A DNA stretch of 43,778 bases, filler included, from Callorhinchus milii (lineage: Eukaryota): NCBI RefSeq assembly GCF_018977255.1. It is 3 parts of 3 records of this genome, joined end to end, with 100 filler letters (N's around TTAATTAATTAA, not from the genome) between each part and the next. Parts side by side here need not be neighbours in the genome. Positions count along the whole stretch, not along the records: positions 30,727 to 43,778 come from NW_024706198.1; 2 more parts are not named here. One strand, given 5' to 3'. This document shows positions 35,307-39,772 of this stretch, piece by piece. The notes beneath the pieces are model-generated. The model did no database searches. It was not told where the DNA came from and saw nothing but the letters and a program-made list of their open reading frames with translations. Numbering within the stretch: the first letter of the stretch is position 1; every line of letters begins with the position of its first letter. The position numbers and the translations under genes were made by a program.

Positions 35307-36030
35307 ATGTCTCTCCTCTGTGTCTCCATCTCGTTCCTCTTCTTACAATGTAAGTGTTTGTTCCCATAAAACAGCACTACACAGCACCAGTGAATGTCGT
35401 CAGTACAAAGTTACACAATATAAATTATCCTTGGAATTGATGTGTAGCGTTACGATGTAGATGGGACGTCTCAAGTCGCTTCAAATAATAGTTTGTGTGC
35501 TGAATTTTATCGGCAAAACGCGGCAGGCAATTATTTTACTTCAATTTTATTATACATTATAATCATATGTATAAATTAATATTATAATTATATTACATAA
35601 TCCTGATTATATTATATCAACTGACATCAAGGGAGATCAAGCCAAAACTTGCAATGGAATTGTAATAGAAGTGGTCAATGTTGAAGATCTGTTAAACTGA
35701 TGTAATATTGTGTATAATTTTCAGATGTTTTCAGCGCCAAAGTAAAGCAGACACCATCGTCTATTAGCAGAGAAGAATGCGAATCTTTGACAATCAACTG
35801 TGTCTTCGAAGCAAGTTATCAAAGCGTATTCAAAAGTATGGAGTTTTATAGGCGGTTTCCAAATGAAAGAGATTGGAAACCCATCCCTCGTGAAGGACGG
35901 TTTGTTGCAAAGACAGACATGGAATCGTGGTCCTCTTCTCTGGAAATTAATGATTTGCAAGTTGATGACAGCGCTGTCTATCACTGTAAAGCTCGATATC
36001 TCTGGAGTTGGACTAGCGCTGGTAATTGTC
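35307..36030 (+). CDS. NAR-TCR V segment (IgNAR-like V), join(35307..35349,35725..36030)
   Basis: Leader MSLLCVSISFLFLQ with T|GTAAGT donor splices to give YVFS-AKVKQTPSSISREECESLTINC, matching the VNAR pattern VFT-ARVxQTPxxITKETGESLTINC. Only 46 residues separate positions 41 and Cys104, versus 56-59 in V1-V3, V5, V6 and the supporting V, consistent with CDR2 deletion. FR3 reads SLEINDLQVDDSAVYHCKA. RSS is cacaatg (36031-36037), 22 bp, acaaaaagg (36060-36068). Confidence 0.9.
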
Positions 36031-36383
36031 CACAATGCTGTATCTGGGCTTCCAACAATACAAAAAGGCCAATCACCAACTCACAGGTAAAACACAGAGA
36101 ATGTGAACTTGTCAATGAGTTCAATGCGCATTCCTCATTGGTGTGAGACATGCAGTGATGTTTAATATCACTTCCTTTAGGAGACGACCATTATTTGTGA
36201 ATACTTAGGAAAAATTATTACGACTCTGTCGTAAGAATTCTGCTTGATTTCGTATCAATAACAATTTATTGCTGAGGCATACAATTTCCTACTGGGACAA
36301 TATTCCAAAGAATTTTACACGTTATGTCATTGATTGGTTGATTTTAAATTGCAGAACACATATCAATTGTTGTTCAAACCATT

Positions 36384-36455
36384 GGTTTTTGTGTTGACAT
36401 TAAATACTGTGCTGTGGTTGGGAGAGTCACAGTGCAAAACATCAGCACAAATACC
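36384..36455 (+). other. NAR-TCR D segment (coding 36412..36427) flanked by 12/12 RSS
   Basis: ggtttttgt (36384-36392), 12 bp, tactgtg (36405-36411), then ctgtggttgggagagt, then cacagtg (36428-36434), 12 bp, acaaatacc (36447-36455). All three frames are open: LWLGE, CGWES, VVGR. Confidence 0.93.
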
Positions 36456-36767
36456 GCGCAGCTATTTTCATGGAAATACATGAGACGTGACCACTGAAAA
36501 TTTTGTCCTATTTTATGCTGCTTAATATGTCGAAAGCTTGCTCTCAATATTATTTATTTCAAACTGACATTTTGTGTAAATTTTGCAGAAAGCTGTTCGC
36601 TGGGCCGTCATCTTCGTCAGTATTTGGGTGGAAACAATGAAGAGAAACATGATATGGACAAATAAAAAGTCTGAAGATGGGAAAGTGTTGGACAGACCGA
36701 AGTTATTGACCCATTTGTCAACATCTAGTTTTATTTGTCACAGTGATAAACCATGATCTGATATAAC

Positions 36768-36862
36768 AGGTTTTGTACTCTGTAGGATGAGCGTTGTGTG
36801 ACTGTGGTGTTGTGCTGAATACACAGAAGATGGATCAGGAACCAATTTAACTGTAATTGAAA
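36768..36862 (+). CDS. NAR-TCR J segment (coding 36807..36862) with 23-RSS
   Basis: aggttttgt (36768-36776), 23 bp, gactgtg (36800-36806). Encodes CCAEYTEDGSGTNLTVIE with a VNAR-type DGxGT FR4 motif, then a phase-1 donor A|GTAAGT at 36863. Confidence 0.92.
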
Positions 36863-37289
36863 GTAAGTGAGAAAAAACTTCTTTCGTACTAAAATGAAAC
36901 TTTATTCACTTCAATTTGTAAAATGTATTATTCTAAACGACAGCTCCCAATTATTTACAACTGAGCCTTTCCTACAACCGACATTAGCAATTATGAAGAA
37001 AAAGGCATTCTGTGTTGCAGAAAGATTACTGAGCTCCGAATATGAAGCCTGTTTCTCAAATGACCAGCTTTTATTTTATGTTTTGTAAAGTCACTAACTT
37101 TGTCTGGATATTGGTTCCAAAGAGATATACCAAGAGGAATTGTTGACTGTAAATTCCGGTGTTTACTTGACGCAATATATCTTTGGTCAAAGGAAATGAT
37201 AAAAATCCCTATCCTCCTCAATTCTCCCGAGAAGTGGGGTTTCTTTCGAACTGAACTGGCTGCAATGTGTAATATTATATAAACTTCTC

Positions 37290-37771
37290 CCGTGCCCCAG
37301 AGGATCGAATTCAAGATCCTCATCCTCGCCTACAAGGCCATTCACGGCCTCGCTCCCTCCTACTTCTCCAACCTACTGTCCCCCGACATAACTGCCCGTA
37401 ACCTCCGTTCCTCTGGCTCCGGACTGCTCCTCATCCCCCGCCCCAACCGCCCTACAGCCTCCCAGCCTCTACGCTCTGGAACTCTATCACCCAGTGCCTT
37501 CGACTTGCCTCCTCCCTTTCCTCCTTCAAGGCCGGTCTCAAGACTTTCTCTTTGACAGAGCCTTCAGCTCCGCTCTCAACTCTCTACCCTCATCGCCCCC
37601 TTCATTCCCTCCACTCAGCCTGAACATTTCCCACCTCCACGCTCCCTCCCTTCCCTCCCCTCACCCTGACCATGTCTCCTCTGCTAGGGTCCTGACCCAA
37701 CTTGTTTCAGCGCCTTGGGACTTCTTCCCGACGTGAAAGGCGCTCTATAAATGTATTCTTGTTGTTGTTGT
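37290..37771 (+). mobile_element. L2-like LINE 3' fragment in the J-to-supporting-V intron
   Basis: PQRIEFKILILAYKAIHGLAPSYFSNLL...RNLRSSGSGLL. The 3' tail (gcgccttgggac...cccgacgtgaaaggcgctctataaatg, ttg repeats) is shared with the SINE tail. Confidence 0.85.
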
Positions 37772-38589
37772 TTCTTCGTCCCCCAGTTCCGATTGAATGT
37801 GAAAAGCTAACGCACTTTCCTCTTTCCATATATGCTGAGTGTTTTATTCTTAACCTACAAGAAAGCTAATATCAAGCTTGCTGATACGCAGCGATTTCTG
37901 AATATGTAATATATGAAAGTTGAAGAAACAAAGAAAAGCGATTTAGAGAGAACGAAAGGGTGAAAGAGATAAAGAAGNNNNNNNNNNNNNNNNNNNNNNN
38001 NNNNNNNNNNNNNNNNNNNNNNNNNNNNNNNNNNNNNNNNNNNNNNNNNNNNNNNNNNNNNNNNNNNNNNNNNNNNNNNNNNNNNNNNNNNNNNNNNNNN
38101 NNNNNNNNNNNNNNNNNNNNNNNNNNNNNNNNNNNNCTTCAATGAGCAGCTGATACAGTGAGAGAGAAACTGATATTGGCAACAAGTCAGAGACAAACCT
38201 CCTCCAGCAGCGGTGTTAAAGTAACGCCATTTACAGCAGGAAACGTTTTATTTGCCTCAACTGTAAACGCACTGATATAACTGCACAATCTGACAGCTGA
38301 TTCTCTGCTAAACATTCCCATGAACATAGGCAAAGTATAAGATTACAAAAACTTAATTAAACGTTGCATTGATGAGCGATCATAACAATGGTGTCACAGC
38401 AATAGCCACACGTTGGATGGTGCAGAGCAGCACTCTAAATTTATCCATTCCTCGTCTCTTTCTACTGTTGATTGAACAGTGATTCTTACATTTAGTATAA
38501 AGGTTTTCACGGACACGTTAGCGTGGGTGCTATGGTCGTGGACAGGGTTCGATGGAGATATTCTTGAATGATGCCCAGGGCGAGAGGCT

Positions 38590-38850
38590 TCATTCAAATG
38601 AAGATACTCGGGTCTCTGGCAATGTTCTGCTTAGAGACCGAAGGTTGAGTGGAGATCTGATTGAAGTGTTCATATTTGTGAGGGGATTTGATAGAGTAGA
38701 TAGATATAAATATTCTCATTGGTCAGCCTTTCAGTAATCAGAGTACCCAAATTTATGTTACGTGGTAAAGGGTCCCGAGGTGAGATAATGAGGATTTGTT
38801 TTTGCAAAGAAAGTTGTTACAGTCTGCAATGCACTGCCTGAAAGGGTTGT
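38590..38850 (+). mobile_element. CR1-like LINE fragment
   Basis: RRLSGDLIEVFIFVRGFDRVD matches the CR1 RRLRGDLIEVYK motif. Confidence 0.75.
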
Positions 38851-38909
38851 GTTTGGGTTAGGTTCCATGATGCCATAATTCTAAGTAACCTGTAATTTGC
38901 ATCCTGCAG

Positions 38910-39211
38910 GATCGCGTAATACAGTTTCCCAGTCACCGCCTGAGCAAAGTGCTTTTGCTGGTGAGAGGATAAATTTACATTGCCAATATTCACGAATCTG
39001 TGGAAAGGATTTCAACGTCTCCTGGTACCGTCAGTCCCCTGGCGAGGAACTCAAATATCTGCTCCACAGAAAACCCTCAGGAGTGGGAGGAAAACCCACT
39101 GGAGATCATATTTCTGCTTCTCTTGACACTGCCAAGAATATCAGCGTTTTAACCATCGCCGACCTGCGGCTGACAGACTCCGCTATGTATCACTGTGCAC
39201 TCAGTCTGCAC
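38910..39211 (+). CDS. Supporting TCR-delta V segment of the NAR-TCR cassette (apparently leaderless)
   Basis: Phase-1 acceptor catcctgcag at 38909 is in frame with the J donor (A+GA = Arg). Exon reads SRNTVSQ...NLHCQYSRICGKDFNVSWYRQ...DSAMYHCALSLH with an extra CDR1 Cys (38999-39001). RSS is cacagtg (39212-39218), 23 bp, acaataacc (39242-39250). Confidence 0.9.
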
Positions 39212-39772
39212 CACAGTGGTACACATCATAGGAAGCCTCGTACAATAACCCTCATCACAACCAAAGCTGGGAAAAAATACATTACAGTTAGTGATAGACA
39301 GTGCAACAAATCTTTTCCAAACTGCCACCATGGCTTTTAACTGATTGAGCTCATATTAAGTCACTTAAAATATGTGATACTTCACTCGCTGAATATTTGT
39401 TTTTTTTTCACCAACAGATATTACACTGTGATAAACTTTTGTCGGAATTTGGATAATTAGTGAGTTACATATGTTAATAATTACGGTAGTAAAAACCTAA
39501 TGAAAATGTGATAGTCCTTGTGCTTGACGTTGTGGCGTATCACTTCATTGAGACGTCAAAAAGCGCTTCAGAAATGACGATGTAAATTTCATTGTATTTC
39601 GTAGTAAAATCGTCGCCACCAACAGTTTCTTTTTTAGAGTGAGAGAGTAACATCAAAATTCTTTAGGATTATGGTCAGCAAAATAATAATATGAACCAAG
39701 TGTCAATAATTAAAGAACATATGTCACTTATATTCACAAGGAGAATCCGTTAAGTGATATTTTACTGTCAGT

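Follow-up and report, generated by a model that had tools for sequence, protein, structure and literature searches.

Does the alpha/delta region for the T-cell receptor (TCR) of the holocephalan Callorhinchus milii hold, in germline form, a whole unit for a receptor chain with two variable (V) domains? To our knowledge, the NAR-TCR is one of only two T-cell receptors in which each of the two V domains comes from a V(D)J rearrangement of its own, and it is central to the debate on the movement of antibody-like single-domain V segments between immunoglobulin (Ig) and TCR loci. Here we consider a window of C. milii DNA (43,778 nucleotides, the whole stretch that was analysed; assembly GCF_018977255.1), and within it the 13-kb piece from NW_024706198.1 (positions 30,727 to 43,778). 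We find that the segment at 35307–39250 on the + strand is very probably an intact-looking germline NAR-TCR cassette, with conventional V segments on either side, in the region for TCR alpha/delta.

NAR-TcR genes, that is, doubly rearranging TCR delta genes, are known from elasmobranchs, nurse shark among them (Criscitiello, Saltis and Flajnik 2006, as cited by PMC1845163 and PMC3149040). They were reported in C. milii survey sequence in 2007 (Venkatesh et al., PMC1845163) and again in the C. milii genome in 2014, where IgNAR was not found (PMC3964593). The NAR-TcR V is recognized by a typical leader, a cysteine in its a-b loop, and a missing tryptophan in the WYRK motif, and the associated delta V is recognized by the lack of a leader and a conserved cysteine in complementarity-determining region 1 (CDR1) (Venkatesh et al. 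2007, PMC1845163).

Organization of the cassette

The span from 35000 to 39600 was read, with every cassette border checked by script, and the features are collected in Table 1. The initial annotation had listed a leader, an IgNAR-like V, a diversity (D) segment, a joining (J) segment with a DGSG motif, a phase-1 join, and a downstream V with its own 23-type recombination signal sequence (RSS), and each of these elements could be located. The proposed in-frame junction TVIE-R-SRNTVSQ is borne out by the splice sites, as the J donor A/GTAAGT (36862/36863) and the acceptor cag/GA (38909/38910) together create AGA, an Arg codon, and leave the frame open. The description of the cassette as complete holds for the readable sequence but not for the intron between J and the second V, which contains an unread gap. 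No other ATG-to-GT candidate upstream of the NAR V exon is strongly hydrophobic, and the leader is near-identical to that of the C. milii paralogue model P0001, an ab initio-looking gene model and not a cDNA. The same paralogue has the same J-Arg-V join (TVTK-R-KSYTVSQ).

RSSs and V exons were sought across the 13-kb piece, with the expected number of RSSs taken from shuffles. A strict scan returned 6 sites against 0.6 expected, four of the six inside the cassette, and a looser scan was needed for the D 3′ RSS and the RSS of the second V to surface. All of the sites lie at V, D, or J borders, apart from a single weak match with an 11-nt spacer, located at the outermost end of the piece. In the five RSSs of the cassette, every heptamer begins with CAC and the nonamers are A-rich. 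The NAR unit has a 22/23-type RSS at V, 12-type RSSs on both sides of D, and a 23-type RSS at J, an arrangement in which the 12/23 rule permits V-to-D and D-to-J joining. With their own RSSs, NAR D and NAR J would allow a separate V(D)J rearrangement, as read from the germline. The second V, termed the supporting V, also has a 23-type RSS; it therefore cannot recombine with the 23-type J, and RNA splicing is the sole route joining the two. The spacer and nonamer of the supporting-V RSS are 77% like those of a conventional V at 42.5 kb (family D7). Four V exons only are present in the piece, all on the + strand.

The same layout is found in catshark. Gene model P0006 maps to catshark locus L001, in which a leader comes first, then a V whose RSS has a 22-nt spacer. 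The D (CTGGGTTGGAATATT) lies 390 nt past the V and has a 5′ 12-RSS; 377 nt past the D is the J, which has a 23-RSS and whose phase-1 GTAAGT donor leads into a 3.7-kb intron and a leaderless V with a 23-RSS. In the cassette, the V-D spacing is 381 nt and the D-J spacing is 379 nt, and the D core CTG(T)GGTTGG is common to both D segments. A holocephalan and an elasmobranch thus have in common the layout, the spacing, the D core, and the phase of the splice. The two loci differ in that the D 3′ RSS is poorly defined in catshark, whereas it is a clear 12-spacer signal in the cassette. Beyond the germline, the cDNA-like shark proteins P0023, P0040, and P0041 run from NAR V through J and the supporting V into D, J, and a constant (C) region, and this continuation into D-J-C shows the doubly rearranged product in sharks.

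Likenesses to the elasmobranch genes extend from the order of parts (leader, NAR V, D, J, intron, and leaderless supporting delta V with its own RSS) to the a-b loop cysteine, the F in place of the WYRK tryptophan, the DGSG motif, the CDR1 cysteine, and the phase-1 J-to-V splice. On the other hand, the cassette is only 37–43% identical to them in NAR V and ∼45–50% in the supporting V, its J ends in TVIE and not TVTA, and the V-encoded part of CDR3 is longer.

The first V domain

Several lines of evidence place the first V with the V of IgNAR (VNAR). Pfam assigns the exon to V-set, and in a phmmer search of PDB the top ∼30 chains were all VNAR (E 9e-15 to 4e-9) with almost gap-free alignments; Ig and TCR V domains appeared only from about E 1e-8. 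A protein search with NAR V alone gave three C. milii fragments only, the word index having missed the VNARs. An AlphaFold2 (AF2) model of the exon (pLDDT 72) had VNAR as its 46 best Foldseek matches, with TM 0.70–0.80. The claim that this V has a CDR2 deletion is substantiated by its dimensions. From the W or F of the WYRK position to GRF there are 17 residues in NAR V, as in a VNAR crystal sequence, versus 28 in the supporting V, and the residues between the canonical cysteines number 62 in NAR V, 61 in VNAR, and 71 in the supporting V. Because both lengths match VNAR, the deletion (C′-C″) is real and VNAR-sized.

A maximum-likelihood tree of 50 V domains (NAR-TCR V, VNAR, shark TCR V, supporting V, and human VH, V-kappa, and V-lambda) leads to the same assignment. 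The conventional V references were metaclust cDNA-like chains found with the J-C part of P0023, which could not serve to name C-delta. NAR V falls inside the NAR-TCR V clade (97/88), which joins VNAR (99/95), and the two together are set apart from conventional shark TCR V, supporting V, and the human VH, V-kappa, and V-lambda domains. The kinship proposed for the domain at 35725–36030 is thus supported, as it groups with NAR-TCR V and VNAR and not with conventional TCR V.

The residues that tell NAR-TCR V from VNAR can be followed through 17 aligned two-domain NAR-TCR proteins, taken from C. milii and seven species of shark. The a-b loop cysteine of NAR V lies in SREECESLTINC (EEC), and its E-C pair is invariant (17/17); F replaces the WYRK tryptophan in MEFYRRFP, as it does in all 17 proteins, compared with W in VNAR; and the G-S of the J motif DGSG is likewise found in 17/17. 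What the cassette V shares with VNAR is a single-domain V fold without the C′-C″ strands, the ESLTINCV and SLxINDLxVxDS motifs, and 30–43% identity. VNAR differs in that it keeps the WYRK tryptophan, has no a-b loop cysteine, uses three D segments, and is spliced to IgNAR C exons, whereas the cassette V would be spliced to another V.

These comparisons bear on the idea that the NAR V-D-J belongs to an IgNAR cluster, and thus to an immunoglobulin gene rather than a TCR gene. The VNAR-like V is what such a cluster would contain, and the V23, 12-D-12, 23-J order with ∼380-nt spacing is of the Ig heavy-chain cluster type. This explanation is nevertheless scarcely credible. The a-b loop cysteine and the lost WYRK tryptophan are NAR-TcR traits, the tree sets the V apart from VNAR and with NAR-TCR V, there is a single D, J precedes a V exon and not C exons, and the study of the C. 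milii genome did not find IgNAR (PMC3964593). Membership of an IgNAR heavy-chain cluster was considered as a candidate in its own right and rejected on the F for Trp, the one D, and the V exon after J. A NAR-TCR cassette remains the preferred reading.

Two further features of the CDR3 region can be described. The NAR V exon continues for 12 residues past CKA (RYLWSWTSAGNC; 35995–36030), with an extra cysteine and a D-like CTCTGGAGTTGG, and NAR J (36807–36813) opens with two cysteine codons; shark paralogues carry cysteines thereabouts too. The cysteines and CTCTGGAGTTGG may reflect germline V-D joining or germline-encoded CDR3 disulfides. The compact, Ig-cluster-like V-D and D-J spacing (window 36031–36806; L001 4482–5263) is conserved in cartilaginous fishes.

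A speculative and rather unlikely proposal takes these features together. In its V-23, 12-D-12, 23-J order, with segments ∼380 nt apart, the NAR unit would retain all of the grammar seen in Ig heavy-chain clusters and not that of TCR delta, the 12-codon 3′ extension of V with its D-like CTCTGGAGTTGG would be a possible trace of germline V-D1 joining, and the origin of the cassette would lie in an Ig-type cluster with two D segments that was placed ahead of a delta V, the lineage being one without IgNAR.

The supporting V domain

The supporting V is 79–87% identical to several C. milii supporting-V protein models, the best match in the protein collection being P0002 (87%). An identical protein for the cassette copy was not present in the collection searched, where the best match to NAR V was 86% over half of the domain (P0033), and all close protein matches to the cassette V domains are from C. 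milii. In the tree, the supporting V lies within the clade of second domains from shark two-V proteins (98/87), which in turn sits among conventional shark V domains employing the same C region (95/84). When PDB was searched by sequence with the supporting V, the V at 32 kb, and the shark C region, multi-domain single-chain variable fragment (scFv) and Ig chains dominated the lists, so that TCR could not be separated from Ig and the C region could not be named in this way.

The supporting V is leaderless. In the 773 readable nt upstream (38137–38909), no credible leader was found, and the donor of the best candidate there, GTTGAG, is poor; an in-frame TAA at 38894–38896 stands five codons 5′ of the exon. 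The CDR1 cysteine lies in QYSRICGKDFNVSWYRQ (RICGKD) and is invariant (17/17) in the alignment of two-domain proteins. The sole ATTTGCAT octamer in the piece (38894–38902) is located just 5′ of the supporting-V acceptor and overlaps the in-frame TAA; as ∼0.4 such octamers are expected in the piece by chance, it may mean nothing.

Could the supporting V instead be an ordinary TCR alpha/delta V with its leader in the gap or further upstream, and the NAR V-D-J a separate unit? The phase of its acceptor (1) is that of the usual leader-V introns, the gap is unread, and the leader introns of neighboring V segments appear long, with no leader found within ∼400 nt. However, the lack of a plausible leader and the in-frame stop codon speak against an ordinary V, as do the CDR1 cysteine and the placement in the supporting-V clade, members of which are published as leaderless (PMC1845163). 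Furthermore, NAR J has a consensus donor, no C exon, and only this V to splice to. We consider an ordinary V very improbable. [quoted passage not shown]

Continuity of the cassette

The assembly gap at 37978–38136 (159 N) lies inside the 2047-nt J-to-V intron. Since the gap is wholly intronic, no exon, frame, or RSS depends on it. No repeat pair and no tandem array was detected across the gap in the readable sequence, with Tandem Repeats Finder reporting nothing near it. The adjacency of J and the supporting V is supported indirectly by their common orientation, by the absence of another exon for the J donor, and by the same arrangement in catshark. Another gap, of 146 N (34409–34554), precedes the NAR leader by 750 nt, so the promoter region of the cassette is only partly readable.

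The gap raises the question of whether the parts are ever expressed together. The copy could be silent or decaying, or the scaffold could be a chimera of two paralogous cassettes. Such an outcome would be in line with the unread gap between J and the supporting V, with a multicopy family whose paralogues are 60–87% identical, with a fragment of a short interspersed element (SINE) in the J-V intron, and with the neighboring V at 42.3 kb, which has lost the first canonical cysteine and so shows that the array has defective members. Yet each of the four exons has an open frame, the donors are consensus GTAAGT and the acceptors good, the five RSSs retain their CAC heptamers and A-rich nonamers, the canonical residues are intact, as are the diagnostic ones, and orientation and spacing agree with the catshark locus. 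A silent or chimeric copy is, in our judgment, decidedly unlikely.

Several points weigh against an intact NAR-TCR cassette nonetheless. Continuity between J and the supporting V across the 159 N is given by the scaffold only, and within a family of such similar paralogues a mis-join of two cassettes is possible; the gap might also, in principle, conceal a leader exon for the supporting V. Two of the RSSs are imperfect, although tolerable: in NAR V the nonamer matches 7/9 and the spacer has 22 nt, and in J the heptamer ends with C. [quoted passage not shown] The piece does not extend to the D-delta, J-delta, and C-delta segments, and neither name nor PDB search confirmed the cDNA-like shark C region as delta; its designation as such rests on the literature (PMC5931798, PMC12227049). 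Finally, this copy is described from germline sequence, and its expression is predicted.

Proposed working of the cassette

We propose that, in a developing gamma/delta T cell, RAG would join NAR V to NAR D and D to NAR J, giving a full exon for an IgNAR-like single V domain, and that D-delta and J-delta, downstream and beyond the piece, would be the partners of the supporting V. Transcription would begin at the NAR leader. Splicing would then connect the leader to the NAR VDJ, the phase-1 J donor to the phase-1 supporting-V acceptor, creating the Arg codon, and the rearranged supporting VDJ to C-delta. The outcome would be a delta chain that carries two V domains, of which the membrane-distal NAR V would be an unpaired binding domain. 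The a-b loop cysteine of NAR V is probably disulfide-bonded to the CDR1 cysteine of the supporting V.

TCR mu of marsupials and monotremes provides a parallel, as it too has two V domains, with an outer, somatically diversified, antibody-like domain and an inner supporting one (PMC3457774). TCR mu is, however, regarded as convergent; its V is VH-related, its locus is apart from TCR alpha/delta, and the marsupial supporting V is germline-joined.

Table 1. Parts of the NAR-TCR cassette, with positions in the window
Feature	Position or length	Strand	Boundaries and basis
NAR-TCR V leader exon (MSLLCVSISFLFLQ + first base of split codon)	35307–35349	+	donor GTAAGT at 35350, phase 1
Leader-V intron of NAR unit	375 nt	+	acceptor AG at 35723–24
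NAR-TCR V exon, IgNAR-type, C′-C″/CDR2 deleted	35725–36030	+	open frame; Pfam V-set; PDB; tree; lengths; fold
NAR V RSS: CACAATG (36031–37), 22-nt spacer, ACAAAAAGG; 23-type	36031–36068	+	RSS scans
NAR D 5′ RSS: GGTTTTTGT (9/9 nonamer), 12-nt spacer, TACTGTG	36384–36411	+	RSS scans
NAR D coding, 16 nt, CTGTGGTTGGGAGAGT	36412–36427	+	open in all three frames
NAR D 3′ RSS: CACAGTG, 12-nt spacer, ACAAATACC	36428–36455	+	looser scan
NAR J RSS: nonamer GGTTTTGT(A), 22/23-nt spacer, heptamer GACTGTG	36768–36806	+	RSS scans
NAR J coding: (G)CCAEYTEDGSGTNLTVIE + A; ending ..EYTEDGSGTNLTVIE + A	36807–36862	+	phase-1 donor GTAAGT 36863–36868
NAR J-to-supporting V intron, 2047 nt as written	36863–38909	+	holds partial SINE-like repeat (∼37290–37770) and gap 37978–38136
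Supporting TCR-delta-type V exon, leaderless: (R)SRNTVSQ...RICGKDFNVSWYRQ...YHCALSLH	38910–39211	+	acceptor ..tcctgcag at 38909
Supporting V RSS: CACAGTG, 23-nt spacer, ACAATAACC	39212–39250	+	looser scan; family D7

Neighboring sequence

At 42257–42603, a conventional V exon with a 23-RSS has its first canonical cysteine replaced by Ser (..GAQVDLESNYVTS..) and is otherwise open. The exon (42259–42564) is 100/100 identical to C. milii UniProt entry A0A4W3HC10, and the segment could represent either a pseudogene or an atypical V. A SINE lies upstream, which is why no leader for it turned up within 400 nt. On the other side of the cassette, at 32329–32678, a V exon with a 23-RSS has a VH-like CDR2/framework 3 sequence (NTADNAKGRFT, compared with ADSVKGRFT). 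Its best per-domain PDB matches are VH, and it clusters loosely with shark TCR V in the tree; it could be an Ig-like V inside the TCR alpha/delta array.

A SINE-like repeat occurs in at least five copies in the 13 kb (∼31940–32260, 32780–33100, 33600–33905, 39772–40137, and 41854–42200). Its head is tRNA-like (TGGAGTC..GGTTCGATTCC), its tail reads ..AGCGCTATATCAAATGCAAGGATTATTATT, and a partial copy is the repeat at 37290–37770 in the J-V intron. ARAGORN called no tRNA in the SINE heads, and the open reading frame (ORF) of the intron repeat had no Pfam match.

Public gene models handle this region poorly. The C. milii UniProt models P0002, P0009, P0029, P0030, and P0032 are artefacts, either starting at an intronic Met and reading through the acceptor or forming chimeras, in which a supporting V is fused to a neighboring V or a conventional V to NAR V. 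The public C. milii supporting-V models begin in the intron and read through the acceptor (PAG/S), and none includes the NAR V, D, or J of the cassette.

Significance of the cassette

The initial annotation had held that the system type is known and that ORF-based annotation would miss D, J, and the true structure. The read-through public models support the latter, and the former agrees with the published record for C. milii itself (PMC1845163, 2007; PMC3964593, 2014). As NAR-TcR was reported in this species in both years, the initial annotation correctly recognized a known system in a species already reported to have it, and the cassette introduces no new principle. The cassette supplies a base-level holocephalan map, with the splice phases, the five RSSs, and the D and J overlooked by gene predictors, and the practical value of this map is annotation.

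If true, a two-D Ig-cluster origin would be relevant to the unsettled order in which NAR-TCR and IgNAR arose. Overall, the cassette shows that the NAR-TCR has retained its layout, spacing, and D core since the holocephalan/elasmobranch split.

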